From NCBI GenBank assembly GCA_048013815.1, contig CM106585.1, positions 8,246,001 through 8,310,000 on the forward strand: 64,000 bases of DNA, read 5' to 3'. Source of the DNA: Setoptus koraiensis (taxonomy: Eukaryota; Animalia; Arthropoda). A program made the position numbers and the translations under genes. Below the pieces are notes generated by a model that was given only the letters and a program-made list of their open reading frames with translations, was not told the DNA's origin and made no database searches. Of this stretch, positions 4,561 through 52,836 are shown piece after piece (the stretch's first letter is position 1; each line of letters begins with the position of its first letter).

Positions 4561-6483
4561 ATGGATAAGGAACGACAAGTCGACAGTTCCTCTTCTGACA
4601 TATCCAAAAGAACCACAAGAGGATCGATTCAATCAGCAAGCATATCATCGCCATCAGCAAATTTGACCTCAATTATCACAGATCACAAGGACACCGATTC
4701 TTCGAAGGTACCCAAAACAAGACCCATCGCCAATAATCAACAAAGCTTGGCCAGCCTAAGCCAGCTTGAACAGCGTAATATGTAAGTACATTTCATCTGA
4801 ACATATATATGTAACCATATGCACTCAAACAGCTGATATTGTCACCCATGAGATACTAATCTGGACATTAATTCCTCCACAATTCATCTCACCTTCTGAA
4901 ACAGCCTAAACACCATATCCAAGGCCTTGAAAAAGAGCCCGCCGGATCGCAGCGACCAAGATGAACAACTACTGACTGAGTGGAGCTGTCTCATACCCGA
5001 AATAGAGGCTCGCAAACAGCGCTCTGAACTACTGAAACAGAGATCTATTGAACAGGAGGAGCCATTTGAATCCATTGAGAAGAAGGCCACAATTTTGGCA
5101 CATTTGATTCGAACTCACAAATCTATAATCGTTTACACGGGAGCTGGCATCTCGACCTCTGCATGCATACCAGACTATCGCGGGCCCAATGGACTGTGGA
5201 CGCAATTGAAGAAAACAGGAGCCTTCTCCATAACCAAAATACTTAATTTGGCCGCTGCTGAACCCACTTATACTCATATGGCCATTGAGGAGTTATGTAG
5301 GCGAAAAATCATAGCCCATGTTGTTTCTCAAAATTGTGATGGTCTCCATTTACGCTCTGGTATACCTCAGACAAGCCTCTCTGAGATACATGGCAACATG
5401 TACATAGAAGTTTGCACAAATTGCAATAGGCTCTACTATCGTCTAGCTGATGTTACAGAGAAAACATCAAGATTCCATCATAAGACTGGCAGAAAATGCC
5501 ATGATTGTATTGAACCTAACAACAATCTCATAGATACTATCGTGCTTTATGGTGAAAGAAGCAAGTTAGACTGGCCCATGAATTGGACAACCGCTACTAA
5601 TGTGGCACGAAAAGCTGATCTTATCATATGTCTTGGCTCTAGTTTGAAAACTTTGAGGCGCTACGAGGCCCTGTGGCCAAAGAAAGCTGACCGAACATTT
5701 GCACAAGACACAAAACTAGTCATTATCAATCTTCAGTATACTTCAAAAGGTGCAGTAATCATAGCTAAAACTTTATCATAGTTTCTTATTATTACTACTT
5801 GAGATATCTTATATCACATACTGACTGCTATATTTCAAACTACCAATTTCTTTCATTTCACAGACAAAAATGCGTGTTTGAAAATCAATGGAAAATGTGA
5901 TGATGTCATGAAGCTGGTAATGCAAAAACTGAATATAAAGGTTCCCTCATACGATTGGTTTTCTGATCCTCTCCTCAGATTGCAGACGCCATTCTCCGAG
6001 GAAGAGAAAACACAATTGAAACGTGTTTTATTGTTCCAGGATCAATCTAGAGGCGAAAAGCTCTCACTTAGAGAATCTCCCAATTTAATATCCGAGATAT
6101 CTGACGACCCCGAGACGAAGCAAGTGAAGATGCGCATCAGGATTAATACGCATCCCAGTATGGTCAAACGAATCGATGAGGATACAAAACTACATGAAAA
6201 GGCTATAGATGTGAAACCGAACATTGATCTAAATGCCTCAATACCTGGTTGGTTGGGAAAAAGTCTCACAGGCGCAAAGAATCCTTCTTCGAAGAGAAAG
6301 AGGCATGGTAATAAGGGTAAGAAGCGAGGTAGTAAAAGAGCTGGGTTAATGTTAAATGAGGATGATGTTATATCTCATGAGAAAGACGAGACGCTAGAGA
6401 ACTCCTGTAGCACCACCGCTTCCATTGTTGACAAAATTTTTCCAAAAAACGAGATCACTATCAAGACTGAAAGTCTAAATTAA
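4561..6483 (+). CDS. SIRT7: NAD-dependent deacetylase sirtuin-7; exons 4561..4781, 4905..5749, 5864..6483 (561 aa)
   Basis: Motifs VYTGAGISTSACIPDYRGPNGLWT, VVSQNCDGLHLRSG, SEIHGNMYIEVC (catalytic His), Zn-binding CTNC/CHDC, DTIVLYGE, CLGSSLK and NLQYTSK|DKNACLKINGKCDDVM match SIRT7 better than SIRT6. GT-AG introns 4782..4904 and 5750..5863 are frame-consistent. Confidence 0.93.
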
Positions 6484-7217
6484 ATTTGGCATTCGATAAA
6501 AATAAACAAGGTGCAACCACCTTTCAGAGCACCCATAATGCACCCGCGACTCTTTTGTTCTTGTGGCCGCTACAGAGGCATTGGTTTCTCGTTCACAACA
6601 TCTGTCAAGGTATAATTGTTGTGGAACGTCGCAAACTGAAGTACATTGTTTTTATGCAAAATTTCCATGCTGTTGATATATCTAAAAGATTGCTTTACAT
6701 ACCATTGATACCAAGACGACAAGAAATATCTGCTGCGATATATTGGTTAACTCGGCTTAAGCTACGCTAGTGTGAGGCTAGACAATGAACCGCGCAGTAT
6801 CTCATTGCCTATCGCTGATTGACGACGGCCTTCCTATAGTATCAGCTGCAAAGCGTTGTCAATATAAATACGAGATCAATTTTTTATCTCGATCACACTA
6901 ACAAATATATATACATTATTTTATTATTTTTACTTACAGAAGATAGCTCAAGACCTATCAATGCGACACATTTTTACTGTTTGGTAACTCAATAGTTAGC
7001 GTCGACAAATGACATATTATCGACTTTGTCGTTGTCATCGTTCATGTTGTCCAATTATCACAACCGCTAAACGGACAATATATTGGCGCGTCTAGTGAAT
7101 TCATAAGGGACCCGGCGAATATTTTTCATTAACAATATTGTTGTAGTCGTCGTAAATAACTTCCGAATATAGAAGACATAGATCACGCCCAATCACAGAA
7201 GATCAGAGGTGGTGAGC

Positions 7218-9790
7218 ATGGCACCATCTATCACACACGACGGCTCAATTAAGGATGCCTCTCGGCGGTCCAAAGGACAGGATAATGATCACTCGGATGT
7301 TGATGAATTCACGTATGGCACCGATTGCGATTCATCAGCCGCAGAGGACTCTTATTTGTTGCATTACGATAGTCCCGAATGCGCCCTATTGGCATATGCC
7401 AGAACCAACAAATTAGATAAATTACGCAATCTTTTACAGGCCAGGCGAGCTAGACAAATAAATCTAGATCTTAATTTCAAGGGACGCCAAAAGCAAAATT
7501 TCAGCTGGTCTGCGTTACATCTGGCTAGTTACTTCGGCAATGTTGACATTGCTAAGGAATTGCTGAGATACTTCAGCACAGAAATAGATGTTAATATTCA
7601 AAATAATCTTGGAGACACTCCATTACACAAGGCCACATTAACACAACGAGAGGATATGGTACAATTATTATTAGAATACAATGCTGACATATTCATTAGA
7701 AACTCCGACGGATTAACTGCAAAGCAGCTCACTCAACACAATCGTATTGTTGATCTCATAGATGCAGCCGAAAGTGCCGATTATAATCGGCGTAAGCTAA
7801 CTCTATTAGATGCAATTATCAACAATAATCTAGAGTATGTCAAGAAAAGCATATCAATCTATGATTGTGCCTCACAGCATGTTGGCCCTACTACTACCGC
7901 AACTGGTCTATCATCAACTGATGCAAATACTCCATTCAACTCCAATTCAATTGAAAACCAACAAAAACAACTACTGAATACAAATCTAGATATACGTTAC
8001 ATCACAGATGACAGAGGAAACACCCCGCTACATTTGGCTGCGTTGAGAGGACACAAAGCTATGTGCGTTTTGTTACTCGAGAAAGGTCTAAAGCCTCATG
8101 TTAAAAATCATCGTGGGCAAACAGCAATAGAGGTGGCCACATTTCAGATTCGACAGCTCCTAATGAATGTCAAACCATCAGATACTCAAATTAATAGGAT
8201 AACTAAGCAGCACTCCGTCAGGAGATTCGAAGGTCAACTCATGAAGAAGGTGCGCTTCCTTGGCTGGAAACCGATCTATGCCGTCCTGGAGAATGGCGTC
8301 TTCTTAATATTCAACAATCGGAGTGATTCCATGAACAAATCTCGCCGTGGTTACAAGTATCTCGAATCTGCCACATGCGAACCGGACCCTGTCAATGTTG
8401 GTGTCTTCTGTATATGCTTTTCGGATCGTTCCAGAGTACTATTAATGATTCCATCAAACTCAGTCACAGCCACTAGTCCCTATTTGGCCAACGAATCTGA
8501 CCAATGCTCTAAACCTGTGATAATAACTTCTACTTCCACCACTAACGCAACTCAATCACCAAATAGAAATATAAAACTCGTAGAATTGGCCAGACAGAAA
8601 TGGACTGATGCAATAAATGACCATATACGTTATTCAACTGAATTCATCAAAAAAGGTTTGCGCTTGAACGAAGATGATGACGATGACTATTGCGACAATG
8701 GCGCCGTAGGTGGCCTGTCCAATTTGAATCAGCTACTTCCTATCGACACAATAACATCAATATTCCAGGAGGCCAGAGCCCATCAGAGCATTCTAGAGCG
8801 TCATGCAACCTCGTTGACCTCTCTCATTGAAAGTATACCTTCTATTAGTGCAATAGTTTTACAAGGGAAAACAAACGGCAGTGGGACTGATAATCAAAAT
8901 CAAAAAGCACAGGATTCCTCATATCGGCGCAATAGTTCTACTTCGCAACATACACAAGAACGGCCCCCCTCGGGTGGTATTTTTAGTCGAATGGCGTCAA
9001 GTTATCGCTCCGGGCGTAGTCAAACAATATCAGAAGTTCCCGGTGATAGTCACAAGAACCTCGCGGATAATGCACCAGATAGCAGTGGCTTCAACGAGAG
9101 TAGCGTGAATCACCCAAGTATGCCGGTAGCCTCGGAATTCCTCCAAGAAACCTGGCCTTCTGTTTTGTTTCATCTGAAATTGCTGATAGAAAGCTCTCAA
9201 CATACCAAGGCAACCTTGTCTCAGGCGTTGAGTTTGATGGAACACCAAGAACACATGAGACAGCAAAGAATTCAAGACCAAGAAGAAAGATGTCGAGTGC
9301 TTGAGGATTCTCTGCACATGTTAGCTCGGGATCATCACGAATTAGAAAAGTCTATATCTACAACTAGCCTATTGTACAATACTGCAATGGCTAGGACTGT
9401 ATCCATATCAACTGTCAACACGGATCTCAATGAGTATTTTGATGCTTTTGAAGATTTCGATGACGAAAAAACTGTCACCCCGAGTTCCATGCCCAGCGAT
9501 GATGAAATTGATTTCGAAGACATGCCACCTAATTTTTTAGGTAACAAAACAAAACAAAAAAGCAACATTAAAACATTGAATGAGGCCATTATGAGAGAAC
9601 GGTCACCAGCAAACAACGGCAAGCTTGTCAGTAACGAATCGCAATTAGCTAAAGTTAATGTGGAGTTAGAAGATGACGACGATACTAGAAGTGATTGTTC
9701 CGCTTTAACTGTGGAGAATAATAATGAACAATCCGAATTGGGAGTGGTGCATTTCGATGGAGTGATCACAAATCAGGGTCAAAAAAATAG
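7218..9790 (+). CDS. OSBPL1A: Oxysterol-binding protein-related protein (ORP1L type), exon 1: ankyrin repeats, PH domain, FFAT motif
   Basis: Ankyrin motifs WSALHLASYFG, GDTPLHKA and GNTPLHLAALRGH. PH domain FEGQLMKKVRFLGWKPIYAVLENGVF..RQKWTDAI. FFAT motif EYFDAFE. The exon ends AG|GTAAGC at 9790/9791 (phase 2). First ATG is 7218. Full spliced CDS 7218..9790, 12285..13510, 13594..13787 = 1330 aa. Confidence 0.9.
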
Positions 9791-12284
9791 GTAAGCAACT
9801 ACTACAATACATAGTTCTATGTCATGCATGTGTCAATTTGACTACGTATCGCTCGCCTTTGCCAATGAGTTTATGAGTAGAGTATCTATAGATCTTCGTT
9901 GAAATCTCTTCTCCTATTTCCTACTCAGTAAACCACCCGTTATTAGTGATGCTGAAACATCCGCTAGCGATAAGTGTGATCTAGCCGATCAATTAGTTGA
10001 AGCATCTTAGTAGGCTAGTACTCAATCGTTCTTCGGCTCGTTCAAAAAAAATAGGAGGAAATAAGGTCATATCCGAGTGGACACAAATTTGACTTTGAGA
10101 AACAATGATTATAACAGTGGTTATCGATTGATGATGATAAAGTGTACTTGTGCATGTCACCCAATTTTTTCAATACCAAGTAAATTCACTCAATAGATCG
10201 TCTAGATCTCAGCTGGTAGCAATTGTCATAAATATGCTACTGAACGTCTCTAAGCAAACACGATAGAGTTTGGCCAACGTCACCTCAGACACTTTCGTGT
10301 GATTAGAGGTAGTACATCAATTGCAATTGTAGACTAGTTTCAGTTGAAAATTATCAATAGAGATCGTACAAATCTAGCTAGCAATGTCACATGTTTCATG
10401 TCTATGGTAGTGAAGTCGAAATTGCGCATTTTCATTTTTTTGTTTGTTTCGCTGATAAAGTACGGTATACTAATATATCACAAGTAGTACTGTAATCTGT
10501 TATTGTTGTAGATGACAAATTGGTTGTGTCGCGTTAATCAAATCATTACATCCGTTCAGACTTCTTGTGAGATTATACTTTAAATCCATACATGTATCCA
10601 TCGAAATTGAAATGATCTTGATAAATTCGATTGAAACAGCGAACAAACAGACAAATTGTCTGACTGATTGACAGGCAACTTTGATGTTATCCGTTTTTCA
10701 AAAGGAATGTCGACAATTGATTTGGGTTATTATCGCGTAATATCAACATCATCTGATACGTTAATTTGAAACATGCACTTGCAATTTTAGAGATCTTTTG
10801 CGCCGTTTTCATACAACACTTTCAAGGGTTTTCCTGTGTTCGCGTCGAGCATGCGACATGTACTCGTCTGTGTGCAAATGTAAACAAATCTCTGCGTATA
10901 AATGTGTGTCCATTGTACAATTGTTAGTGGAAACATTCGCAACATTTATTCATTTCAAGATGAGCGTATTTGTTGAAACATCGTATGGTTTTATTTGATT
11001 GTTAGTCATGCCATCTTTTGTTTATATCACCGAATGAAGGGACCTCACCAACAATGGGACATGATGCATGCAATTGACTAGTGACAATTAGCATTAGAAT
11101 ATCCCCTCGTTATATCACACGAAAATAATTGACCTGGATCAAATCACATGACACCTGCCCGAGCAAACACACTTACCATATAGAATTACATTGTATCCTC
11201 GAAATCTGTCCAATATTGCAAGAAAATATAATCGTTGGATTTACGCCCGTCTGGATAATATTTGCATAATATATTACACATCCATAGATATACTATTAAT
11301 ATCAATAGTATATTAATACATAACCAACCTGCACCGATCACACGAGGACTCATGAGAAAATAAAATAGGGTTGCCGCTGATCCTCTATCCACTGATAGAA
11401 TTGCCGCTGGATTTGGGCAATTCATGATACATTCGGACTGGTGAATATTTACATTCTCCCACGGAACGTTTCTGTATCAGCAACAAACAAAGCTCAGTGG
11501 TGGCAGCAATTAATTTGAAAGCCTTTGTTGTTGACGGTCTGTTGATGTAGTAGTTGTAAATATAGGGATTCCCAAACAGAGAAACTAGTCAGTTTCGTGA
11601 ATCATATCCATTAACAACAGTGACACATACACCATACAGACAAACAACAGGCGACAACAATAGCTAGAAATAGCGACCATCATCGTATATTGTTGTCATA
11701 AAAAATATACTGTTTCGTTGTTATCATCGATATCGACAAACATCATCAGAACGACAAAACAGCCTTGTTGGTCGTGATGATCTTTCTCATGGTGTTGGAC
11801 CAAATTCTAGTTCGAAAGTAATCTTTTTCAGAGATACAAAAAAGTTCTCAAAGGCGAATTTACTGTGTAAAATATTCCAATAGTGTATGCATATTTGATG
11901 CTATTCACACAATACACTACCAACAACAATTTACCAAATTTATCATAATTTAAGACCACCACACACATAAATAATCGAGATCAATTATCACAGGTTATAT
12001 CAATATTAACTTGCCACCATGGGTGATTTTGCCACAGAGCAGAAACAGTCCAATGAAAGTCAATCAAAGTCACACAGGTACACAATACTATTGCATCATA
12101 TCAAGTATTGGCATTGTTGGTCAATCAATACTAAAAGTTACAACTACACTTCGCCATGATATATTCATGTGTGAACTAACAACTAATCAGCTAATGCATG
12201 AGCCGAGACACTCCTAACCATTTGTTATAATTCTTTTTATTTTTCGCTACTCTTGCCCCTACTAATTAACTAATTGATATGCAG

Positions 12285-13787
12285 AACACAATTACCATGT
12301 CCTATGGTGAACAGAGACCAGATTAGCATATGGAACATTCTAAAGAATTGCATCGGAAAGGATTTGTCTAGGATAACAATGCCCGTTGTTTTCAACGAAC
12401 CGTTGACTATGCTGCAAAGAGCCTGTGAAAGTATCCAATTCTCGAGGTATATACAGTTGGCTGATCAGAGCGATGATCCTATTGAACGAATGGAGTATAT
12501 TTGCGCATTCATCATTGCCGGTCTCTCGGCAAATTGCGAACGTATAATCAAGCCATTCAATCCGCTACTTTATGAAACCTACGAGATTGAGTATGAGCTC
12601 GATCAAGAGGCCAAGGTTCGTGCCATGGCTCAGCAAGTTTCCCATCATCCGCCTATTAGTGCCGCCTACAGTGAATCTGATCATTTTGTTTATTGTGGCA
12701 GCATCAATCCGAAAATTAAATTCTGGGGCAGATCCGTTGATGTGCAACCCGATGGTCAGTGTAGTATTATACTCAAGCGACATAATGAGAGATATACATT
12801 CAAGTCTGTGTCATGTACAGTCCACAATATTATAGTTGGAAAATTGTGGTTCGAACATCATGGTCCTCTAGAGGTTATCAATCATACAAACGACGTTCGT
12901 GCTCAGTTTGATTTCAAGCGTGCCGGATGGTTTGGTAAGGATCTGCATAGATTTGATGGATTCATAAGTACATGTGGCAAAAACAATAACAAAACCAAAA
13001 TTAATGAAACAAACAACAGCAAAGGGACAAGAGTGCGTTTCATTTACGGAAAATGGAGCGATTATATTAAATCAGTGGACGTAGCCGATTACGAAAGGTA
13101 CATGCAAGAGAATCCAAACAAACTATTCCGAATACCAGATAGGCCAAAAGAGGAGATGTCATTAATGAGCACGACTAATTTATTGTCGAAATTTAAATCA
13201 ACTAGCATAGGATCAACACAAGCAACAAATTCCAATCAACAAGACTTTTCGTGTAACAGTGACAACTATCCATCAACAGAATCTGACACTGGCCTACCCA
13301 AAGGTGAATCCATGGAGTCATTAGATATACCCAACTCAAGAATATTATGGCGACGCAGTTCAGATTATCATAGGGACTATTACAATTTTACAGACTTTAC
13401 CATGATACTCAACGAGCTTTCAGATAATATTGCATCTACGCTGCCTCGTTCAGACTCAAGATTTAGGCCGGATGTTCGAAGTTTTGAAGAGGGCGACTTG
13501 GATCAAGCAGGTAAGTGTGCACAGTAGTAATGATTTTTGGTCTGATTAATGCAAGATCCAGTCTAACCCATAAATTTCATCTTTATTTTGTAGCGAACGA
13601 AAAGCATAGACTGGAAGAGAAACAGAGAGAGGCCAGAAAGAAGGTAAAGAAAGGTACCGAGCCTCATGAAGAGTTGTTATGGTTTGAATCAGTAGTTGAT
13701 CCAGATACAAAAGAAAAAGTTTGGACTTATAAGGGTGGATATTGGGAGAGCAAAAACGACCCATCTAAATTTGCAAATATTTTCTAA
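12285..13787 (+). CDS. OSBPL1A: ORP1L-type protein, exons 2-3 (12285..13510, 13594..13787): OSBP-related ligand-binding domain (ORD)
   Basis: ISIWNILKNCIGKDLSRITMPVVFNEPLTMLQR, KPFNPLL.ETYE, QVSHHPP, GKLWFEHHG, SDSRFRPDVR and EKHRLEEKQR. The acceptor CAG at 12282-12284 matches the phase-2 donor; intron 13511..13593 is GTAAGT..TAG. Confidence 0.93.
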
Positions 13788-14829: not shown

Positions 14830-15714
14830 TCAGGAATGTATTGTAATGACTTCACGGCCACTTCCCTGAACTAGCAGCACACGCTCTAAACCATCGGTGA
14901 GTACCTCAATGAATTCCATATCTGATCATTCATCGGATTTGTGACATTCATTGGTTTCATCGGATCGGTCGGATTTTCAGTTGGATATTCAGTTTATAAT
15001 GAGGGAGACATGAGTAGGTATGGGAGAGAAAGGTAAATAGTGAGTCAATCTTTAAATTTTGAATTTAAATTTTGTCACAAGTTACGAGTGCTAGCGCCAC
15101 TACTTACAGTTACTTTCGGCGCCCCTGGCAAGCGTCTTAGGTGCCCCTGGCATGTTGAGTATGACTAGTTTGGCTGCGCGACTCTTACTTAAGATGACCT
15201 CATTCAATCTAATGGCCGTGTGCATTCTTCTGACATTGGCCTCGTCGGGTTTCAGATTGAGTAAGTTGGCGCCAAGTTGATTAGATGCCGACGAGTTTGT
15301 TGCGACAGGTGGCACCGCCGATGATGACGCCGCTTGTGATTGGTTAGCCGTATTAGATCGATTTGTTGCGGACGACGACGATTGTTGTTCTTGGTTTGTT
15401 GCATTACTCTTTGTTGTTGCTTTATTAGTGTCTGTGGTTGTTTCTTTTAATGAAGAATCGTCCTCATTGAATTTATATCCTACCATCGGATAGGCGCTCG
15501 TCGCGGGCTGATGCGACGATGAATCGTCCGAATAAATGGTGTCCTCGTATTCGCTTGCCGATGGCTTTCTAATGGTGAATCTAATAACACGGCCATCCAC
15601 TTGTTCCAACAGAACAGATTGTTTTCTATTTTGATTGAGTCGTTTAATGATTTCGCTACGCTGCTCCATCATGAGAGTGCGCTCGTAAGCATAATCGGAT
15701 ATTTCCGAGTCGCC
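14830..15714 (-). CDS. kcc: K-Cl cotransporter (KCC, SLC12A4-7 type), last two exons: complement(15108..15714) and complement(14830..14921)
   Basis: [49 protein letters not shown], and terminal N|[30 protein letters not shown]. Intron 14922..15107 is GTAAGT..CAG (phase 1). Confidence 0.95.
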
Positions 15715-19658: not shown

Positions 19659-21744
19659 ATGGCCCGTCTTATATCGCTGCTGTCGCTGGCGTGCGCGCTC
19701 ATACTCATACTAAACTGCAACTTTATCCGGGCCGGAGGCAAGGGCAAAGGCGGCGAGGGAAACATAATCATTTCCACCGGCGGCGGCACCAAGTCCACCA
19801 TCAAATTCATGAAGGTAAGCCACTCCGCTCGCTCATTACCTGACCAATCAATCAACCTTGTTAATTAGCTTTAATGAACTTTGTCTCTAATTGATTTTCT
19901 CTCTATCTGCCATCCACACAATTGCTGTCACTTAATTTTCTGTGTCACTCAATTGCCCGCATTCCCGCCGAAAATTTGAAAATTTGAAAATTTGGAAATT
20001 CGAAAATTCGAAAATTCGAAAATTCGCCAACCGAAAATAACAACAACAGATACCCGTACCATACCCCGTGATCAAGCACGTCCCGTACCCGGTGCCAATA
20101 CCCGTGATCCAGAAGAAATACATTCCCGTCGAGAAGTACATACCCGTCTACCCGAAACACCATGAGCACGGCGGTCACTACGGTGGCGGCGGCGGCGGAA
20201 GTGGCTACGAAAGCCAACAGCACGAACAATACAACAGTCCCGGCATGATGGGCTCCCACGAACAGCCGCAACAAATGAGCGCGGCCTCAAATCAACAAAA
20301 TCAAGCCTCGTCAGAGAGCGGCGCTCAGCCAATGTCCGCCTACTCTAACGGTCAAATGGTGATGGCCAGCTCACAGTACGCCAACCCGATGGCCGCGGCA
20401 AGCTACGGCTCGTACGGCGGCTACGGTCAGGCCGAGGGCGGTTACGGGGCCGGATTTGGCTCGTACGGGGCCGGCGGGTACGGTGGCGGCTTCGGCGCCG
20501 GCTCATCCGGATACTCGTCGTACGGCGGTGCCGGCTACGGAGACGGCGGCTACGGTGCAAGCTACGGGGGCGGTTATGGTGGCTACGGGGGCGGCTCAGG
20601 CGGCAGCGGATACGGGTTTGCGGCATCGGCCAATTCGCCGTACGCTAGCGCACTAGAGGCCACCGGCGGCAGCTCAGGCGAGAGCGCCTCACAGTATGCC
20701 CAACAATACCAAGCGGCGGCCGCACAACAGTACCCAGGCTACCACGCCCAGAGTATATCGTCCATTTCCGGTTTGGACTCATCACCGCTGACAAGCGCGG
20801 CCTCTGGTGGCTCCTCCTCGAGCGGGGCCAAGGATTACAGTGGCGAGAGCTCGCATCGGTCGCCGTCGTCGTCGACAGCGCCCACCACTGGCGGCAACAG
20901 AAACGCCGGCGCGTACAGTCAGTATCACTCTTACCTGCCCCATTCTCACTCGTCGTCGGCCTCATCGGCGTCGCTGTCAACAACGCCAACCACGTCATCG
21001 GCCTCGTCATCATCGGCCTCGGGTAAAAGCGGCCGCTCGCTGGCCTCGCCATACGGATCGTCGGCATCGGGATCGCCGGCGTCGGTCTCGTCCAGCTACG
21101 ACAGCTACACCGGAAGCAGCGGCAGCTCAGGTAACTCAGGTAAAAGCAACAACAACGACAATTCCTGGTCAAACAATCGTTTCACCTTTGCTACGCCCAG
21201 CTCAAGCGCAAGCAGCTCAATAGCGACAACGTCGTCTTTGGCGAACCAAGGCGCCAAAATGGGCAAATCGTCGCAGAGCGGCCAACTCCAATCGTCAGCC
21301 GGTGCCTCGTCGTCACCTATCGGCGGTTCCTCAAAATCATCACAGCAACTGGCCAATGGCGAGCTAATGCAAGCAGTGTCATCCATGACAACGGCCTATC
21401 ATCAGAGTCCGTTCAGTGCGGCCGGCGCACAACAACAAATGTTTGTAAACCAACAACCACAACAACAACAAATGTATCAGATGCAGCAGCAGCAGCAGCA
21501 GCAGCAGAATAGCAGGCCGATTGCGCAACAACAAACTACAGTCTTACCACCAATTATCTCATTGATGTCGCCACCAGTGAGCCAACAGCAGCAGCAACAG
21601 CAGCAGCAACAGTCACTACAACAGCAAGCGCCCGCGATAGGAAATCAAATTATTCAACAGATCAGAAAGCTGACGACGCAACTGACCAACAGCACCCAAA
21701 CTGCCCTAAATAACGGAATTGTTGGTGGCTCGCAAAAGCAATAG
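19659..21744 (+). CDS. Nested secreted low-complexity structural (cuticle-like) protein; exons 19659..19814, 20050..21744 (616 aa)
   Basis: Signal-peptide-like MARLISLLSLACALILILNCNFIRA. AAG|GTAAGC donor and CAG| acceptor join in phase 0. The protein then runs IPVPYPVIKHVPYPVP (PV/PYPV), GGY/GYG repeats, a Ser-rich block and a Gln-rich tail over 1.7 kb of open frame. It lies antisense inside the KCC intron. Confidence 0.88.
19970..20026. repeat. 8-bp tandem repeat (GAAAATTT/GAAAATTC), about 7 copies, in the intron of the nested gene
   Basis: Read directly; units grade from ..TTT to ..TTC. Confidence 0.88.
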
Positions 21745-26157: not shown

Positions 26158-28245
26158 ATGATACTTCCGCTGGGAAAAATTGATAGATTGAATCCATTGA
26201 TTGGTAGTGTTGGTTGGACCATTGCAATTGTTGGGATGATAATAACGGCTGGTTTTAGTCGCGCTGCCAGCCCGTTGTCGACCAGCAAACCCTCGCCAGT
26301 GGCGGCTGTCGATCTGGTGAAGATGCCACAATCTTTGCAAAATCACAACAATACAACAACGATTAACGATCAGCTGGCCGACGACTTGGATTCATTTGGC
26401 ACCTTGAATGACGAGCATAAGAAAACTAACGAGTCTGATAGAGTATTAAATGGCTCGAATGATCCAGATAGTCATAATAATAAAACACATGTAACCAGCC
26501 CAGTGGAATCATTCAAAGCTAGACACAAATTCAAGCTGATTGGCGGCGCCACAAACAATGACACAATACAATTGAGTTTGCCAAGATGGTTCAATTATGA
26601 GCTGTACAAGAGTAAATACAACAAAAACTACGCTGCCATTTTGAATGGAAGCGATCGGATTGCCGATTCAAAGAGGAGTAAGATTTATTTGCAGACGGCG
26701 TTGAAAGTTCTCGATTATCGTGCCAGATTTCGAGCAAACAAAACAAGCTCGTTGGTGTTCATTAATGAGCTTTCCGACCTGGTAAGTGGCTGAGCAATTG
26801 ATACGGGTGCCATTTTGAGTGGCAACCACAACTTGAGCTATCACAATTCAATAAGAAACCAACAAAGTAAAAGGTGTTCAAATTTATATTTCGATTCCAT
26901 AGACAAGCGACGATGTTGTGGAAATCACCTCCGCCGACCGCTCGTCCATTCAAAATGACAGTTTGGCCAGAAGGGATAATTGTTGCTCCTACGACGAGGC
27001 CATTAAAAAAATAAAACTCTACTATCGATTGAGCGACGACCAGTTGCGACGAGCAATCATAGACGAGATTTCGGTAAGTTTATTCAATTTATTTGAGCCA
27101 CCTAACTCAGTAAAAATCACTATAAGTCGTGTGTGTAGGGCATTTTGTCATTTTGGGGCCACACACACGATGGAAACTGGACAGATAATCGATTAATTTG
27201 TGTCTATAATTGTTTTGTGGCGCAGGAAAAGCCCATGCCCGTCCGAGGCGGATTAGCGGGCAAGCAGCAACGAGGGCGAGCCAAGGGACGAGATGAGGCT
27301 CTCGATCAGCAACAATTTCCGTTCTCAAGATCCGTATATTACAGCAAATACAAACAAATTTATTATAACAAGGACAAAAATAAGCGCAACAACAGCAGTA
27401 CGCCAACGACACTGACAACAACAACAACAACAACAAGCACAACGACTTCTCCTGTGGACACTGCAAAATCGATTGTGGAGCCCACCACCAGGGGCCAGCC
27501 ACAACAAGCGAATGATGACGTGGGTGCGGGGCCCCGCGGAGCAAAACAAGCCCACAAGTCCAGTGATGGCGCCAGTGATTTGGCGAGGCTTGGCGATTTG
27601 AGAGTGGACCAAAAGTCCGGCGCCATTTCTATCGACAACAGCAGCGGCCCCGTAGCCAAGGTGAAACGGGAGCCCGCTACTATGATTTATGAGAATAAAA
27701 CACGCACTGCCAGCCAGAGGCAAGATAAAGATGTCAGTGCCGCGAATGAAGGAGATAAATTGAACAAAATTGACATTGATAAAGGCCCATGGGCACCAAA
27801 CAAAGGATTAGCTGGTGGCGATACCGAGCCGCTGGTTGTAAGCGAACTGGCTGAGCCACCGCAAACGGCAGCAACTGAGAGGGCAGTTGCAGTTGCATTA
27901 GGTAAAAATAATGGTTTATTAGAGACAGGTTTAGAGGACGATGCATCATCATACGGCGGCCATGATAATATTGGCGACAATAACGGGACAGCCGTGAGAG
28001 GCGACGCGGATTCGCTAGAGTCGAGCCGTATCCAACAGGCAATACAAGATCAAATTGTGGAACAGATGAAGTCGCAAATGGGCGAACAATTACGCTCGAC
28101 ATTCAGTCAACATTTTGGGAGGCCCGTCGCGGTGAGGCCAATGCAATTTTTTACCGCCACCACAACTCCCTTTCCCGAGGGCGTGCTGCCGCCATTCATA
28201 CACCAGCAGCAACAGCAACAACAACCGTCTCGCCAATCGATATAG
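26158..28245 (+). CDS. Nested secreted protein with a cathepsin propeptide inhibitor (I29-like) domain and long disordered tail; exons 26158..26781, 26903..27073, 27226..28245 (604 aa)
   Basis: Hydrophobic N-terminus LIGSVGWTIAIVGMIITAGFSRA. Spliced segment YELYKSKYNKNY..DSKRSKIYLQTALKVLDYR..SSLVFINELSDL|TSDDV aligns to the papain-family prodomain pattern (ERFNIN- and GNFD-like motifs). Two phase-0 GTAAGT..AG introns (26782..26902, 27074..27225) keep the frame. The gene model is more certain than the domain call. Confidence 0.8.
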
Positions 28246-29420
28246 TGCCCGTGCGGGCCGATATAGCCGGGCGCAAATAGCCGGGCGCAGATAGTCGGGC
28301 GCGGGTAGTCGGGCGCGGCCGGTCAACGAGCACTAATCATTGGGCGAGATCGCGCAGCGAGACAGATACGAGATAGAAAATGAATGATTGCGCAATAATG
28401 CCGCTGATAAGCACGAGCCGAGAATATAAATAGACGCTCGGAATATATATATAACATGTATGCTAGCAATATAGTGTAAGCCGGCCGATGCCGCCAGACA
28501 ATGTCTTTGCGAGATAATGTGTTACTTGGCGATAATCATTAGGGCGCCGGCTCGTGACGAAAGAAAAATGGGCCTACAAGCAATGGCGAGAATTTCACCG
28601 GGCCGAGCCTGAATCGGCCATGAATCATGCAATCATAAACACAGCAACCGCAACAACAACAACAAGCCTGGCATGTGTTAAAAAGATCATTAAGTCGGCC
28701 AGATATTGATAGCTGGGCCAGATGCTAGGTGAGATGAGGCTCCCCTGGCATTTGGCCAGTTAGCCAGTGGGCCAGTTGGCCAGCTAGCGGCCATGACACA
28801 CATTGCTCGCTCATTGGTTATTTATCATATATAGTGCTGCTGTTGAGATTTGCTCGTTAGCTGCAAGTCAGTGCAACTGCCAGTTAGCACTTGTCAGCCA
28901 CTAACGGGCCATAACGAGGCCCCCGAGAGCGCCGTTTGTCGTGCTGGTTACTCAGTGAGCCGACCGGCCCCCTGTCGAAGAAGCCCCAGTCTCAGCTTGA
29001 TTAGTGTAACTGACTGATTTGTTTGGCGGCCATGGTGCCCATTGAGCCAGCCAACAATCGGCACAATCCAATTAAATGCTCTCATCACTGTTTTGGCCTC
29101 GCTGTCGTGGGCGCCCGATTGGTCAGTTTGTGTCCGACACACTTATCATGCAGCAGTCATTGGGCAACATGACAAGACGAGATCCATCTGAATTTATTGG
29201 TCAAAACGATCTCGATTGTGTGCCCTCGACCATTTGGGGCCGGGGCCCGCGCCGTTGCCGCTGACCCAAATTCGATCAGATCGGCGCGATCGGATCGGAT
29301 TGGATTGGACGGATGGGGGGGGGGGATCAGAGCGCGAGTTAAATGAAACGAGTTTCAGTTGAATGCAGCGGGCCAATGTCACCATGTTCGCCTGAATAAA
29401 ATTATTACTGATCCCGCTGG

Positions 29421-31710: not shown

Positions 31711-32073
31711 GATATGGTCGCGATATAGCTGACACACATACACTGGCACAACATTGACAAAACTGACCACTAATGATGGTGGCCGTGGCCGTGATCGTTA
31801 ATGGGCGCCAGGCGCCCGGCGACACGCGCAAGCACACGCAGCGCAACAACATTTATGTTTGTTGTTGTCGCTTACGTAATCAAAACACGAGCATCTTTGT
31901 GTATGCGCAGTCAACTGGCAATTGTTTTACTCTGCCCAATGTTTGGCCGTTTGGTACCATTCTAGAGAGTTGTGAGTTATGGTGATTAGAGCCGCCAGCA
32001 ACGGGGCCGACATCGCTGTAAATAACAACAAGCGCGATATATTGTAGCATGCATACATAGATACAACACTCAC

Positions 32074-33962
32074 CATCTCCACTATGTCCACCTGGGCCTC
32101 AATGCGCAAATGATAGAGGAATTTCTTGAGATCGTCGCGCATCTGAATGCTGTTGTCCTCCGGCTGGGCCACTGTGAATACGCGCAATTGACAACTTTTC
32201 CATGTTCGATGCTGCTTCAATAGATGGGGCAACAACATCAACAAGCCGCCATCGTGCACTATCCACCAAATGTCTATGTAGCCGCCTAATTTATCGCACG
32301 ATTCCGGCCAAGAGTCTATGCCCTTCACCACTAACAGGGCATTCTGGGATGCCTGCACGGTGCGCATTGTTTCAATAAATTGATGGGCCCTGCTGGGCGG
32401 CTGTCCGCTGCCGGCACCGTGCTGCTGACCACCAAGCTTACCAACGGCCCCACCGCTCGCCAATGTGGACGAGGGCCGGGCTCGCCAACGCTGGGGCCAG
32501 CCCACAATGACCGTGTTGTGTTTTAGTCCGCCAAGGCCGGCGGTTTGCACTTGATAGGACACTCCGTCCATGATTGATGGTGCAACTAGTACATCGGCAA
32601 AGCCTTTCACTCGCTCTTGTTGCATCATTTCTTGCAAATTTGTTTTTGCTTGCACACCAACAGAGGCCAATCGCTTGAAGTCGCCCTCGATAATTGATGA
32701 GACCAATGTGAGCCCTTTGCCTGCTTTCAATTGGGCCGCAAATGTTAGTAATTTGGGATGTGCCACAACCAATGAATCGCCAATATTGATGAGTTGTGTA
32801 GTTGCTGTTGTTGTTTGGTGACCAGTTGTTTCACTGTTGTTTTGCTGTTTGTTGTCGCTGTTAGCTTGTTGTTGTTGATCAGCCACAGAGGCAATTGCAA
32901 TGCTAGGCACCATCATATGTCCGGGCGCTTGCTGCTGTTGTTGTTGGAGTTTTGATGACGGCGCATTCACTATGGAAGATGGTTTCAATTTGCAAAATAA
33001 CAATATCTGCGGGCGCCAATTCTTAATATGAGGCTCGCCAGTTTCAAGCCGCAACAGAGAATAACGGGCCGCCGACAGGGCCAGCCCGTGCAGTCCGTCG
33101 CCCCATTCCTTTTCGGCGCCGTGAAATTCAATGTATTTGTATATGATGCCGGCTAGTAGCATTGCAATGACTGTATAAATCCACGATGATACAAACATGA
33201 CAAATAGGCACAGGAAACAGCCTAACAATGATATCGACCAATGATAATGCCTGAATCTTGGCCGCCAATTTGGTGATTTGAGCAATGATTGTAATGTGCA
33301 AGCTAAATTTACAAATAAATAGCACATAACTAGTGACAATGTCAATATAGGCGCTATAAAATCTAAATTACCAATTAAGACGGCCCCCTCGGCTAATATT
33401 AATGATAATAAAATGGCGCGCGTTGGTTCGCCGCTAGGCGAACTTTTAGCAAAACAATTCAAACATGGAATAACTTGATCTTTGGCTATGGCCTGCAACA
33501 ATCTAGGTGCACCAACCAACGATTGCAAGGCAGCGCCCAATGTTGATAATAAGCCACCTATTAATATTACATATGGGTGGGGCCAGGCGATTTGTGTGAC
33601 AGCTAGTTGACCGCCAACAGATTCACCAAATTTGTCCCTAATAAATAGATTATTAAATGAGCTACCAAATAATACTATAGATGATAAATATATAAAACTT
33701 GTTGTTAGTTGAGCCGATATTGTTCCTAATGGTATTGACTTTTGAGCGTCGGCCAAATCGCCGCTACGATTTGAGCCGGCCAAAATGCCTGTACATGATG
33801 GAAAATATATTGCTATCAAAATGGTAAATGATGTTGTTATATCGACAAAAACATGATTGTAATCATTCTGGCTTGTGTTGATTCCCTCGTCATAGCTGAC
33901 AATTGTACGCTTATTCCTGAATCTGGGCATCAGGTTCTTCCACAGCACTCCGCTCGATATGC
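32074..33962 (-). CDS. kcc: K-Cl cotransporter, coding exon 2 (TM6-TM12 and start of the C-terminal domain)
   Basis: G|ISSGVLWKNL, IYFPSCTGILAGSNRSGDLADAQKSIPLGT, LQSLVGAPRLLQAIAKD, MCYLFVNLAC..PNWRPRFRHYHW, EKEWGDG, KNWRPQ, QLKAGKGL, GLGGLKHNTV, IDIWWIVHDGGLLMLLP. Acceptor TAG at 33965-33963; donor at 32073. Confidence 0.96.
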
Positions 33963-49820: not shown

Positions 49821-51200
49821 CGGGTGCGAGTTTCGAGCGGCTGATACGGCGAGCTTATGAGATTAAATTGAAAACTCTGGCCGCTGTTTGCAAATTTCGA
49901 TGGCAAGATCGATGAAAGATGAGACCAACTGATTGCAGATTAGAGGGCCCACGATGACATGCTATACGTATACATGGCGCGTATAATAATATCCTCTGCC
50001 ACGTTGCCAAGCGCGCCAAATGCGCTGCCGTGCGGCCGGCGACCTCCAACGAAATGTTGTTGTCATTTTGATGGGGCCAACATGCGGAGAGCGGCATTTC
50101 GCGCCCGAGCGGCCCCATTATGGCCCGTGCGGCACTTCGGTGGCTGCCGACGCTAATTCTTGTGGATTAATAGTTAAAGACAAGACTCGAGTCAACTCAT
50201 TCAGAGTTCACAATGTGACACGCTGGCTGAGCCTATTTTTTGCAAACTGTCTCATTTCTAAACTAATCCAAGCGCTCACAAGACAGATTATGCGGCCCCA
50301 TATAAATATGTGTGCTGTTGTTGTTGTTGTTGTTTGGGCTGGATGGAGCGATAAAGACAAACGCCGAGCACGTTGGACTCCGACGGTTGGAGTGATGGGC
50401 CCAAATTCAGACAAAATATGATGGATAATGGCTGGATATCGGCGCGGATATTTATGCATAAACGCATATGTGCAAACATTATCGGGATGTATAAATATAA
50501 ATGCAAGAATTTGCGAATATGTATTTATATCTGCACCACAACACACACACGCACACACACTGGCGGCCACTATGGCTGATCTATGGCAGTGTGATGGTGC
50601 TCGCCAGGGGTCACGGGGGCGCCAGCGCGCGGGCAAACAGTGTTGCACTTGACTGCTGGCCGGTGCCAGCCCCCGCGCCCGATCCGATCTCGTCAGCCAG
50701 TCAGCTGACTGGTTCGCAAGGTCGCACGGATGGGGCCCGATAAGTGTAACGATTAATGTAATGATTATAACGAGGATAACGCCATTTTCAACGGCTGAAT
50801 ATTAATGATATTCATGGAAGGCGCTGCACGGACGGGTGCATTCGCCAGGGGCCAGTTGAGTTTGCGAGTTTGCGAGTTGGCCCCGCGCAAAGTTGTCGCA
50901 TTCGCTCTCTGTTTATCTGCTGCCAGCACTTATTTGCTGCCTCATATAAAGCCCATATAAAGCCCAAATAAAGCCCAAATAAAGCGGCCAGCGGGCCCCG
51001 CAACACGCACTCCGCGAGCTCACGAAATGATAAAATGGCTCGCCGGGCCCCTAACGGCAATTGAGCGGCCGAGTGGCGCCTGTCAGGTGCATTGTGCTAG
51101 TTAGTTATATTATGATTGCGGATGCGGCGAATTTGCCGATCCGATCGCGCCGGCCGAGCGGCCGAAACGGCAAGCCCAGCGACAGCGGGGCCTCACTTAC

Positions 51201-51319
51201 CTGGAACGGCCTTCTCGAGATGGATTCGGTGAGTGTTGGCACTGAAATAAGGATCACAAACTTCTGTATTGCCGCTGTCGTTGGTGAGCTGCTGCTGCCT
51301 GCTGATTTGCTCGTACAAG

Positions 51320-51376
<57 letters not shown>

Positions 51377-52836
51377 ATGTTGTCGTTGTTGTTGCGGTTG
51401 GCGGCAATTCGCGACGGCGCCTGGCAAAATATTTGGCGCAGCGATTCCGCGTTGCACAGGGCCCTCATTTTTCGCAGCGCCATCTCTGTGGGCGTGAGCG
51501 GCGTCTTGCTGGCGGCCGGTGCGCCCGAATTGGGCAGCTGGTACGACTGCTGGTTGGGCCCGTACTGATAGAACTGGTGCTGTTGTCCGCTAAGTGACCC
51601 GTGATCAGCCGGCAGCGACGGATCGGCCGGGCCCGTCTCGTTGTAGGGCAAATTTTTAACTGTGACCAGCCGGTCGCCCAGTACGCATATCATCAGGTCG
51701 GGCTTGCCCTCGTAATTGATGAAAATGCCCGTGTAAATGCACGCTATCGAGAACAATACGCAAAACAGCGCCACTGGGGCCAAACGTGACACAAACTTGA
51801 CCCCAATCAGCACCATACATCCAATTAATATTAGCAATAGGGTGCCGTATACGCGAATGTTGTTATACAAAACGCCAACATCGCGTTGAAAGTCGCCAAA
51901 CAAACCCAATTGGGGCGACATGTAATTGAGCATAATCTCAACGGCGCCCGTAGTGTACATGGCCCCGGCCACTGTTGTGCCCAAAAAGAAGAGCGTGCCC
52001 ACGGCGCCCCCGAATTCGGGCCCGAGCGAGCGCGAAATCATAAAGTAGCTGCCACCGGCGGGCACAATACCGTTTGTTGCAATAGCGGACAACGATATCG
52101 AGGTGCACAATGTTACGCAACAGCATATAAACACCAGAGTAAAGGCGGCAGGTACGCCCGCGGTGCCCACTATCCACACCATTCGTATAAACAATATGAC
52201 GCCAAATATGTTTTGAACGCACGGAAAATACACGCCGCTCAATGTGCCCAAATTTGCCTTGGCCCCCGTAGGCGCCCCAGTGTCGCCGCTAAGCGTATGC
52301 GTTGGCGTGGGCGGCGTCTGTAAATGGCGAGCCTTGCTGTTGTTTGTTGACGACTGATTATCCGGCTGATGATTGGCCGGCGTTGCGGATTCGCCCCTAT
52401 AGTCGATGGCCGCGTAGGGCGCCGCCTGCTGGTGATGCTGGTAGTAATCGTTGTTGTCAAATGTTTGCTGCTCATTTGATTGCAACTGGCTGTTGTTGTT
52501 GTTGTCCAAATTCACTATGGCCGACAACAGATTAGGTATGCGCCTATTCTCGGGCAAATCCTCGTGATACAAATACAAATGTGAACTGTCCGCGGCGGGC
52601 CGCGAAATTGTCGAGCCCGCCGACGGGGGCCGCTGAATGATGGGCTGATCGCTCATTTCGAGCGAGTGATGATTGTTTTTGCTTGATGGGGCCTGTCGGT
52701 TGTTGTTGCTGTTGTTGTCCATGCTAATGAGCTGGCGCGCTTCGTCGTTGTCTATTTCACTTATATCTGATATGTCCACTATGGAGGTGGTGCTCTGTTG
52801 CGCTTGTTGCTGGTGTCGCCGCTCACTGTCTGCCAT
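51201..52836 (-). CDS. kcc: K-Cl cotransporter, first visible coding exon (N-terminus, TM1-TM5, large extracellular loop)
   Basis: LGTLSGVYFPCVQNIFGVILFIRMVWIVGTAG, SAIATNGIVPAGGSYFMISRSLGPEFGGAVG, GTTVAGAMY, GVKFVSR; four loop cysteines. First ATG is 52836. The frame stays open to a CATCAG acceptor-like site at 52900, so an upstream exon is possible. Spliced CDS from ATG 52836 = 1407 aa. Confidence 0.93.

Follow-up and report, generated by a model that had tools for sequence, protein, structure and literature searches.

Results

The 64,000-nucleotide stretch of Setoptus koraiensis DNA analyzed here (contig CM106585.1, positions 8246001-8310000), referred to below as the window, carries a three-exon, 604-codon gene on the plus strand at 26158-28245. 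Exon 1 (26158-26781; 208 codons), defined by its open reading frame and translation, contains the start codon, a hydrophobic N-terminal segment, a variable linker rich in N-glycosylation sites, and a domain resembling the I29 cathepsin propeptide. Exon 2 (26903-27073; 57 codons) and exon 3 (27226-28245; 339 codons plus TAG) were defined by translation; the former encodes a helix-3-like T-S-D-D-V-V-E-I stretch, a variable linker, and a conserved CC-S-Y-D helix ending in D-E-I-S, and the latter a low-complexity, Thr-rich, glycosylation-prone tail with conserved islands. Inspection of the sequence placed two plus-strand GT..AG introns, both in phase 0, at 26782-26902 (GTAAGT..TAG) and 27074-27225 (GTAAGT..GCAG). 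Intron 1 lies directly after the D-L of an N-x-[FL]-x-D-[LW] motif and is spanned by the DL|TS junction of the I29-like gene. The coordinates and gene model of the original prediction, with its DL|TS junction across intron 1, were found to be right.

The gene sits antisense within an intron of a KCC (SLC12) gene. This intron is bracketed by the large middle exon of KCC (31930-33948, minus strand), which matched Pfam AA_permease and SLC12 and had arachnid KCC/SLC12A4-7 proteins as its best named relatives, and by a C-terminal-region exon (15100-15672, minus strand) whose translation carries KCC C-terminal motifs. The predicted nesting in a KCC intron was confirmed by these minus-strand exons on both sides, with the nested gene on the opposite strand. 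Using tblastn, the same two exons were found to flank the I29-like gene in loci L001, L002, L041, and L042; sharing of the intron is stated for these four other lineages, whose contigs reach both KCC exons, and one of the two exons was seen on the cut-off contig of a fifth lineage. An upstream open reading frame at 20068-21741 was considered as a CUT_N/LET-653-like neighbor of the kind found at L002 and L043 and was rejected, as no similarity was detected.

Conservation of the gene was examined in related loci. L005, on a relative's contig, has the same three exons and splice junctions as the window gene, and the two orthologs share the start M-[IL]-L-P. The intron 1 position was found in L005, L001, L002, L041, and L043 and also in L040, a true multi-exon procathepsin, and in the paralogs L010 and L009 of this genome, while the intron 2 position, after D-E-[IL]-[SQL], was kept in L005, L001, L042, and L043. 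Amino acid identity to L005 was 58% for exon 2 and 39% for exon 3, the latter with near-identical islands. Global alignment of exon versus intron DNA was uninformative at this divergence, and codon-based dN/dS was used; values against L005 were lowest for the C-terminal block (0.13), followed by the I29 block (0.31) and exon 2 (0.37). The three runs holding the locus are DNA and gave colinear contigs without splice joints; inside the gene they differed only in intron 2 (at 27085, at 27134, and by a 17-nt insertion at 27159). The joints that had been reported at 28221-28645 lie within CAG/CAA repeats and were discarded as artifacts. Overall, the locus proved to be a genuine and conserved gene of three exons and not a procathepsin.

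The family to which this gene belongs comprises 29 or more clusters at below 50% identity; with one exception, they are open reading frames without a name, taken from read or metagenome assemblies. A single named relative was found, KAG9511097.1 (P0024) of Fragariocoptes setiger, annotated as a "Cathepsin propeptide inhibitor domain-containing protein." Within its subfamily, the gene is present in a single copy and subject to purifying selection, and its synteny extends across deep lineages. A word search with exon 3 detected no relative of 186 to 593 amino acids, a result of little weight since full-length relatives are longer or are split open reading frames, and a search with residues 285-365 of P0020 returned only unnamed read-assembly open reading frames and no named full-length protein. 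The P0029 reading frame runs through intron 1 in frame and was not counted as a true protein.

No match to Peptidase_C1 (PF00112) was detected on either strand of the window, and the nearest one lies at contig position 8613403, about 300 kb away. At least 35 I29 matches in the genome exceed the cutoff, most of them beside a Peptidase_C1 match. In L002, the whole gene fits within 3.7 kb between two KCC exons; as such compact orthologous loci are filled by the gene, there is no room in them for a Peptidase_C1 exon. Furthermore, the stop codon comes after a C-terminal block that is conserved in the orthologs. The window gene is thus a stand-alone I29-like gene without a protease part, as had been proposed. 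Because intron 1 and an intron of a multi-exon procathepsin of this genome fall on the same codon boundary, the gene was shown, as judged from exon structure and homology, to have been derived from a procathepsin gene of which the propeptide (I29) exon and the intron position were kept and the peptidase part is absent.

The I29-like domain itself spans residues 139-208 (26572-26781, plus strand) and comprises an LPxWF motif, helix 1, a long helix 2, an extended strand, and N-E-L-S-D-L at the exon boundary. Domain searches were performed exon by exon and with a 79-amino-acid piece, the last 5 positions of the I29 profile lying across intron 1. Pfam Inhibitor_I29 (PF08246) matched exon 1 with 15.6 bits (E = 0.021) over profile positions 1-54 of 59 and residues 147-208 (26596-26781), and the 79-amino-acid piece with 18 bits (E = 0.0037); neither single sequence reached the gathering score of 24.4 bits. 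Crammer (2L95; E = 0.083) was the only match in a single-sequence search of the PDB. It was family-level (profile) tests that made the I29 match significant. Comparison of family profile A1 with 14 true procathepsin I29 domains of this genome by hhalign gave 98.6% (E = 1.2e-15). In its own genome the profile found true procathepsin propeptides at E values of 3e-12 to 1e-5, and in the PDB it found Crammer (E = 1.2e-4) and Tenebrio procathepsin L prodomains (E = 0.008 and 0.036). PF08246 was matched by 19 of 30 family members, with a best E value of 7.7e-12. In the HMMER comparison put forward as a check in the original prediction, the single sequence stayed below threshold; homology was established by the profile methods, and the papain-family prodomain pattern that had been described was real.

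The canonical ERFNIN motif of helix 2 (E-x3-R-x3-F-x2-N-x3-I-x3-N) was not found in full. Its positions in the window protein, placed by HMMER alignment to Crammer, are occupied by A169/D170, R173, Y177, T180, V184, and R188, so that only R, an aromatic residue, and an aliphatic residue remain; in the family, the consensus at these positions reads E, H, Y, T, V, R. The region corresponding to GNFD (G-x-N-x-F-x-D) reads F201-I-N203-E-L205-S-D207, in which the N and D are retained and vary little or not at all across the family; the G and F are replaced. Ordinary propeptides showed far less conservation of helix 2 than this family, in which the arginines at positions 188 and 192 are invariant and family specific. 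On sequence grounds, residues 139-208 are a diverged I29 domain that is homologous to bona fide propeptides.

An AlphaFold model of the domain, built from an alignment that included true I29 sequences, had a pLDDT of 81.5, with predicted helices at positions 14-24 and 35-63 and an extended segment at 64-79, while a model from a family-only alignment had a pLDDT of 65.5 and retrieved nothing in Foldseek. With the confident model, the first 21 Foldseek rows were all papain-family proenzymes, propeptides, or Crammer, and unrelated chains appeared from rank 22; the best rows had TM scores of 0.58 to 0.65 and an rmsd of 1.7 to 2.5 Å over 62 columns. A VIA comparison gave a Z of 7.1 to the cathepsin K propeptide and pro-Der p 1 (rmsd of 1.9 Å over 58 residues), a Z near 7 being middling. 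The I29 fold, with a short helix 1, a long crossing helix 2, and an extended strand towards helix 3, was present in the predicted structure, and the proposed structural check therefore yielded a model resembling papain-family propeptides, given the true I29 sequences in its alignment. Complex prediction for the exon 1 domain and a single-exon cathepsin catalytic domain of this genome scored 0.00, with a poorly folded partner and with alignments not used, and this score weighs neither for nor against docking. Scores of 0.80 to 0.81 in an ESM Atlas feature search were noise.

Hydropathy analysis located a hydrophobic segment at about residues 14-33 (26197-26256, plus strand), a candidate signal peptide or signal anchor. 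The 15-residue windows starting at residues 14-24, which together cover residues 14-38, averaged 1.35 to 2.07. An N-terminal hydrophobic segment was also present in 21 of 29 relatives, mostly within the first 25 residues, and the window protein has 14 N-x-S/T sequons, 8 of them in exon 1. These hydrophobic N termini and sequons suggested that the roughly 604-residue protein probably enters the secretory pathway. Of the signal peptide originally proposed, the hydrophobic segment and the secretory-type N terminus stood; the segment is, however, preceded by a rather long charged N-region and could instead be a signal anchor.

The only cysteines of the protein, from a count per exon, are a vicinal Cys-Cys pair at residues 235-236 of the spliced model (26981-26986, plus strand). 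The surrounding CC-[ST]-Y-[DE] helix was present in all six of the other loci examined (L001, L002, L005, L041, L042, and L043). The pair lies about 27 to 30 residues after the D-L, away from the position taken by Cys72 in Crammer or Cys75 in CTLA-2. Among the same six loci, the stretch after helix 3 varied in length and sequence, and the start of exon 2 in the window (T-S-D-D-V-V-E-I-T-S-A-D-R-S-S) has no Gly. A conserved cleft-binding stretch after helix 3, as in Crammer (C72-G73), BCPI (L77-R80), or procathepsins (M-N-G-F), was found neither in the window protein nor among the six loci; P0024 alone retains such a motif (R-M-N-G).

The 339-amino-acid tail is Thr/Gln/Asp-rich and of low complexity, and Pfam matches of exon 3 were low-complexity noise only. 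The tail had been described as about 340 disordered T/Q/D/E-rich residues, which agreed in length and composition but overlooked the conserved islands. A C-terminal block at 28012-28191 (plus strand), consisting of an amphipathic helix-like stretch followed by F-G-R-P-V-A-V-R-P, has 81% amino acid identity to L005, and FG-x-P-V-x-[VI]-R was found in L001, L002, and L041. The conservation of this block and of the CC helix, both missed previously, shows that the protein goes beyond a propeptide followed by a random tail. The order of parts is a hydrophobic signal or anchor, a variable glycosylated linker, the diverged I29 domain (helix 1, helix 2, strand, and helix 3), a variable linker, the CC helix, the long Thr-rich disordered tail, and the FGxPVxVR block.

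Discussion

Protease-free propeptide homologues are rare in arthropods, and a survey in 2017 counted only a handful (PMC5673224). The family described here is a large multimodule version of such a homologue, of which only one member has ever been annotated, and illustrates cleanly how a new gene can arise when only the regulatory exon of a zymogen is retained. Crammer of Drosophila melanogaster (2L95; MEROPS I29) was the best PDB sequence match of both the single domain and the family profile. Crammer is likewise a stand-alone propeptide homologue without a peptidase, and the two proteins share Y-K-S-K-[YF]-x-K-N-Y and I-N-x-L-x-D-L. However, Crammer has 79 amino acids, no tail, and a Cys72-Gly73 cleft motif directly after helix 3, whereas the mite protein has 604 amino acids, a Cys-Cys pair, and two extra conserved modules and is without the Cys72-Gly73 motif. 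Mouse CTLA-2alpha and Bombyx BCPI are also protease-free I29 domains that inhibit cathepsin-L-type enzymes, and both are small single-domain proteins; neither BCPI L77-R80 nor the CTLA-2 C75 position has a positional equivalent in the mite protein. All characterized protease-free propeptide homologues are, to our knowledge, small, and the unusual size noted in the original prediction was upheld, as 604 amino acids is much longer than Crammer, CTLA-2, or BCPI. Salarin of Atlantic salmon is a larger secreted protein of propeptide-like domains without a peptidase; it has four tandem I29 domains, unlike the mite protein, which has one I29 domain plus non-I29 modules. With the propeptides of cathepsin L/K/S zymogens (PF08246 plus PF00112), the mite family shares the predicted fold, the 98.6% profile match, and the phase-0 intron after N-x-F-x-D-[LW], but it has no peptidase domain and has its own L-P-x-W-F lead-in and invariant helix 2 arginines.

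The stand-alone I29 proteins characterized so far all inhibit cathepsin-L-type enzymes (PMC4089206). In procathepsins and in Crammer and BCPI, the stretch after helix 3 occupies the active-site cleft, and Crammer Gly73 and BCPI L77-R80, located in this stretch, are essential; in CTLA-2alpha, Cys75 forms a mixed disulfide with the catalytic cysteine of cathepsin L (PMC4089206). The best explanation for the mite gene, to which we assign a probability of about one-half, is a procathepsin-derived, secretory, protease-free I29 protein that would dock on and hold a papain-family peptidase. Like every characterized I29 module, the domain would dock on a papain-family (C1A) peptidase at its prosegment-binding surface; the target, probably one of the many cathepsin-L-like enzymes of the mite itself, would be held in an inhibited or stabilized state. 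As the canonical cleft-filling stretch is not conserved, any block of the active site would have to come from another element. The best candidate may be the invariant Cys-Cys pair on its flexible linker, for which the C75 disulfide of CTLA-2alpha is a possible parallel, and the tail and C-terminal block could tether or localize the protease complex. The protein would then be a candidate for regulating the cathepsin-L-like enzymes of these minute plant parasites, whose repertoire of them is unusually large, and the Cys-Cys pair offers a concrete idea of how a propeptide without a cleft-binding motif could still control a cysteine protease. The degenerate ERFNIN motif, the partial GNFD region, the variable, Gly-free stretch after helix 3, and the position of the CC pair are points against this explanation, as are the Pfam score of the single sequence, which falls short of the cutoff, and the dependence of the confident fold model on true I29 sequences in its alignment.

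The strong conservation of helix 2 could equally mean a different, fixed partner. A possible but less probable alternative is that the I29-like domain was co-opted for binding or assembly within a secreted mucin-like glycoprotein, such as one of the cuticle, gut lining, or saliva matrix, with the CC pair forming intermolecular disulfides and the C-terminal block binding another partner. Such a role would fit the loss of conservation in the cleft-binding stretch, the degenerate ERFNIN and GNFD motifs, a helix 2 with invariant Arg188 and Arg192 that is almost unchanged across lineages otherwise less than 50% identical, the two further modules not known in I29 inhibitors, and the Thr- and sequon-rich tail. 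Against it, the parts that dock outside the cleft (helices 1 to 3 and the strand) are exactly those conserved, the very large C1A repertoire of the genome needs regulators, and we know of no I29-fold protein with a nonprotease function. A protein that makes no contact with proteases would be the first case of an I29 fold used for another function.

Two further readings are unlikely. The first, raised in the original prediction as a secreted effector against host papain-like proteases, is a salivary effector that would be injected into plant cells, where its I29-like module would block defense-related papain-like cysteine proteases. Pathogens and nematodes commonly direct effectors at the papain-like proteases of plants, the mite probably belongs to the plant-feeding eriophyoids, the gall and rust mites, and the N terminus is of the secretory type. 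However, typical effector families evolve fast, in contrast to this single-copy, strictly syntenic gene under purifying selection, whose helix 2 changes slowly, and the cleft motif lacks conservation; the effector idea was thus left unsupported. The second, which is about as doubtful, is a lineage-wide tethered covalent regulator in which the I29 domain would dock on a papain-type protease, the Cys-Cys pair would form a mixed disulfide with the catalytic cysteine as a redox-switchable block, and the mucin-like tail would serve as an anchor, possibly as a core effector in the saliva of plant-feeding eriophyoid mites that targets defense proteases of the plant. An ordinary procathepsin with a missed peptidase exon, or a decaying pseudogene fragment of one, would share the procathepsin origin of the domain and the intron position but was rejected as highly improbable, as there is no Peptidase_C1 match on either strand of the window, at least five lineages have conserved the C-terminal block that closes the frame, the KCC intron of compact loci is filled by the gene, and the frames are intact with dN/dS values of 0.13 to 0.37.

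The named relative from the eriophyoid mite F. setiger, KAG9511097.1, resembles the window protein in its L-P-A-W-F-N-Y lead-in, I29 domain, absence of a peptidase, and a following helix and A-E-L-Q element that recall exon 2. It differs in having 219 amino acids, a canonical R-M-N-G cleft motif that is kept, and D-A instead of C-C, and no KCC exon was detected within 8 to 10 kb of its gene. KAG9511097.1 may be a paralog or a truncated model.

Results

HMMER comparison of the Pfam Inhibitor_I29 profile (PF08246) with exon 1 of the I29-like gene gave an E value of 0.021 (15.6 bits), and a 79-aa piece reached 0.0037 (18 bits), both below the cut-off of 24.4 bits; the match spanned profile positions 1 to 54 of 59 and ended at the exon boundary. 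The sole PDB match of the single window sequence was Drosophila Crammer, a small stand-alone I29 inhibitor (E = 0.083), and from this sequence alone an I29 assignment would be borderline. Each exon was used as a separate query in sequence searches, and an exhaustive HMMER search with exon 1 (E ≤ 1e-3) yielded 29 representatives, from which the family alignment A1 was derived. The match was limited to query residues from about 126 to 208 in 25 representatives and also reached upstream in the other four (ORFs P0001, P0006, P0012, and P0014). The A1 profile detected Crammer (E = 1.2e-4) and the prodomains of Tenebrio procathepsins L (E = 0.008 and 0.036) in the PDB and bona fide procathepsin propeptides in the S. 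koraiensis genome (E values of 3e-12 to 1e-5), while PF08246 was matched by 19 of 30 A1 members (best E, 7.7e-12). An hhalign comparison of A1 with 14 true I29 domains from the S. koraiensis genome (alignment A2) gave a probability of 98.6% and an E value of 1.2e-15. The Pfam match is therefore borderline for the single sequence, and A1 settles the homology at the family level.

A structure model produced from the family alignment alone had a pLDDT of 65.5, and a Foldseek search with it returned zero matches. Adding the true I29 domains of the genome to the alignment raised the pLDDT to 81.5, and rows 1 to 21 of the Foldseek output then held only Crammer and papain-family proenzymes and propeptides, unrelated chains following from rank 22. 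The best rows had TM values of 0.58 to 0.65 and an rmsd of 1.7 to 2.5 Å over 62 columns, and VIA-align gave a Z of 7.1 against both the cathepsin K propeptide and pro-Der p 1. Because the model depended on true I29 sequences and a Z near 7 is middling, it is consistent support for I29, weaker than the profile evidence, rather than independent proof.

The gene model comprised three open segments on the plus strand: exon 1 (26158 to 26781; 208 codons), exon 2 (26903 to 27073; 57 codons), and exon 3 (27226 to 28245; 339 codons plus TAG), which add up to the 604 codons originally predicted. Both introns were canonical GT..AG and phase 0. L005, a contig of a public read assembly that carries the orthologue, had the start M-[IL]-L-P and the three exons in common with the window gene, with donors GTGAGT and GTAAGT, CAG acceptors, and the same codon boundaries, and confirmed the predicted model. 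Identity between the two was 58% in exon 2 and 39% overall in exon 3, but the latter contained near-identical islands. Codon-based dN/dS values for this pair of 0.31 (I29-like block), 0.37 (exon 2), and 0.13 (C-terminal block) indicated purifying selection. The locus was present in three public runs, whose contigs were co-linear across both introns; these runs are therefore all DNA, and the three-exon transcript is a predicted one. The coding exons were identical in these runs, and all differences within the gene were in intron 2 (two substitutions and a 17-nt CA-rich insertion, at 27085, 27134, and 27159). A 14-nt G+C-rich unit (consensus, ATAGTCGGGCGCGG) is repeated four times in tandem, with 90% matches, at 28263 to 28318; the array begins 18 nt past the stop codon, in what is presumably the 3' UTR.

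The order of parts was identical in the six other loci examined (L001, L002, L005, L041, L042, and L043). An N-terminal hydrophobic segment (in 21 of 29 members) and a variable linker precede the I29 domain, which has a family-specific L-P-x-W-F lead-in and an almost invariant helix 2 (consensus R-I-Y-L-R-T-A-L-K-V-F-E-Q-R-A-L-Y-R-A-G-R), from which the window and L005 proteins diverge most among the members compared. Intron 1 is followed by a T-x-x-E-[LI] stretch resembling helix 3, a linker of varying length and sequence, and a conserved helix, CC-[ST]-Y-[DE]-x-[VA]-x-x-x-I, that closes with D-E-[LI]-[QSL]; after intron 2 come a low-complexity tail and a C-terminal block ending in F-G-x-P-V-x-[VI]-R. 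Both intron positions are conserved in the family, and the CC pair supplies the only cysteines of the window protein. The sole named member, from the eriophyoid Fragariocoptes setiger, keeps the canonical R-M-N-G motif and lacks the CC pair, and no KCC exon was found within 8 to 10 kb of its gene. In the G+C-rich relative L001 (1768 to 3123), the 84-nt intron 1 (V-S-S... to ...R-R-Q) is in frame and stop-free, so that the ORF caller gave a 451-aa read-through, P0029, which has the look of a full-length protein but differs from the spliced product.

Coding exons of the potassium-chloride transporter gene (KCC; SLC12) were located on the minus strand at 51196 to 52872, 31930 to 33948, and 15100 to 15672. 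The last two bracket the plus-strand I29-like gene, which hence lies antisense within a 16-kb KCC intron. With tblastn, the same two exons were found flanking the gene in L001, L002, L041, and L042, and the C-terminal KCC exon was seen in L043 before the contig end. Since KCC in these loci is only 65 to 70% identical to that of the window, the nesting is ancient. The best named KCC relatives, from scorpions, spiders, mites, and ticks (about 66 to 69% identity), were outscored by ORFs from read assemblies that share the large-exon structure. The same intron holds a Gly-, Ser-, and Gln-rich open frame of 558 codons (20068 to 21744, plus strand) with no Pfam match; the CUT_N/LET-653-like gene that precedes the I29-like gene in L002 and L043 was considered as its counterpart and proved unrelated on comparison. 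The upstream neighbours (4927 to 13527, plus strand) were an exon of the Sir2 family and, split over two large exons, an ankyrin/PH/oxysterol-binding-protein gene.

Intron 1 directly follows the D-[LW] of an N-x-[FL]-x-D-[LW] motif, and this phase-0 position was common to three more genes of the S. koraiensis genome. One (L040) is a true multi-exon procathepsin, with F-T-D-W followed by GTAAGC and Peptidase_C1 exons downstream; the others are protease-free I29-like genes of the L-P-x-W-F type. The second such gene, an L-P-Y-W-F-type A1 profile match (L010 901 to 1518, minus strand; G000:C2:18804900-18805517), has a long N-terminal region, an internal, signal-anchor-like hydrophobic segment, and F-S-D-W followed by GTAAGT. 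The third, an L-P-F-W-F-D-Y-type exon (L009 1014 to 1205, plus strand; G000:C2:20269513-20269704), was not among the PF08246 matches of the genome despite an A1 profile E value of 4e-12; it ends in Y-A-D-E, after which a V-S-coding donor-like site stands at the shared position. Given this shared position, the simplest reading is that an intron-bearing procathepsin gene was the ancestor and that its catalytic exons were lost.

Discussion

Stand-alone I29 proteins are already known but are small and rare in arthropods (PMC5673224), and Tetranychus urticae reportedly lacks small propeptide-like genes of the Bombyx BCPI type (PMC3407033). The I29-like gene is a large multi-module form and defines a family whose members are essentially unannotated and whose microsynteny is deep. 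We put the probability that its product is a protease regulator, either inhibitor or chaperone, at about one-half. To our knowledge, all I29 modules characterised so far bind a C1A peptidase; the S. koraiensis genome has a large C1A repertoire, and the conserved parts of the domain are those docking outside the cleft. Counting against regulation, ERFNIN and GNFD are degenerate, and the cleft-filling stretch, which is essential in Crammer (G73) and BCPI (L77-R80) (PMC4089206), is not conserved, the window protein being without the Gly. A different, fixed partner could also explain why helix 2 is so highly conserved, and co-option of the domain to another role is a possible, if less probable, explanation. 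For the conserved Cys-Cys pair, which sits on a flexible linker, a parallel is suggested to Cys75 of CTLA-2alpha, a residue that becomes disulfide-bonded to cathepsin L (PMC4089206), although the positions are not homologous. A role as a plant-directed effector seems improbable.

That the gene is a procathepsin or a pseudogene is very improbable. A procathepsin was rejected on three grounds: no Peptidase_C1 (PF00112) match was found within the 64-kb window, the frame stops after a C-terminal block that distant relatives also keep, and in compact loci, for example L002, the entire gene fits inside 3.7 kb between two KCC exons. The original protease-free description stands. The 48.8-Mb assembly, which is intron-poor and consists of two contigs (24.2 and 24.5 Mb), contained 59 PF00112 matches, the nearest about 300 kb from the window. 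About 13 tandem single-exon cathepsin-L-like genes, with open frames of 495 to 633 aa that each encode I29 plus Peptidase_C1, were observed at G000:C1:8613403-8648418, 300 to 340 kb past the window end.
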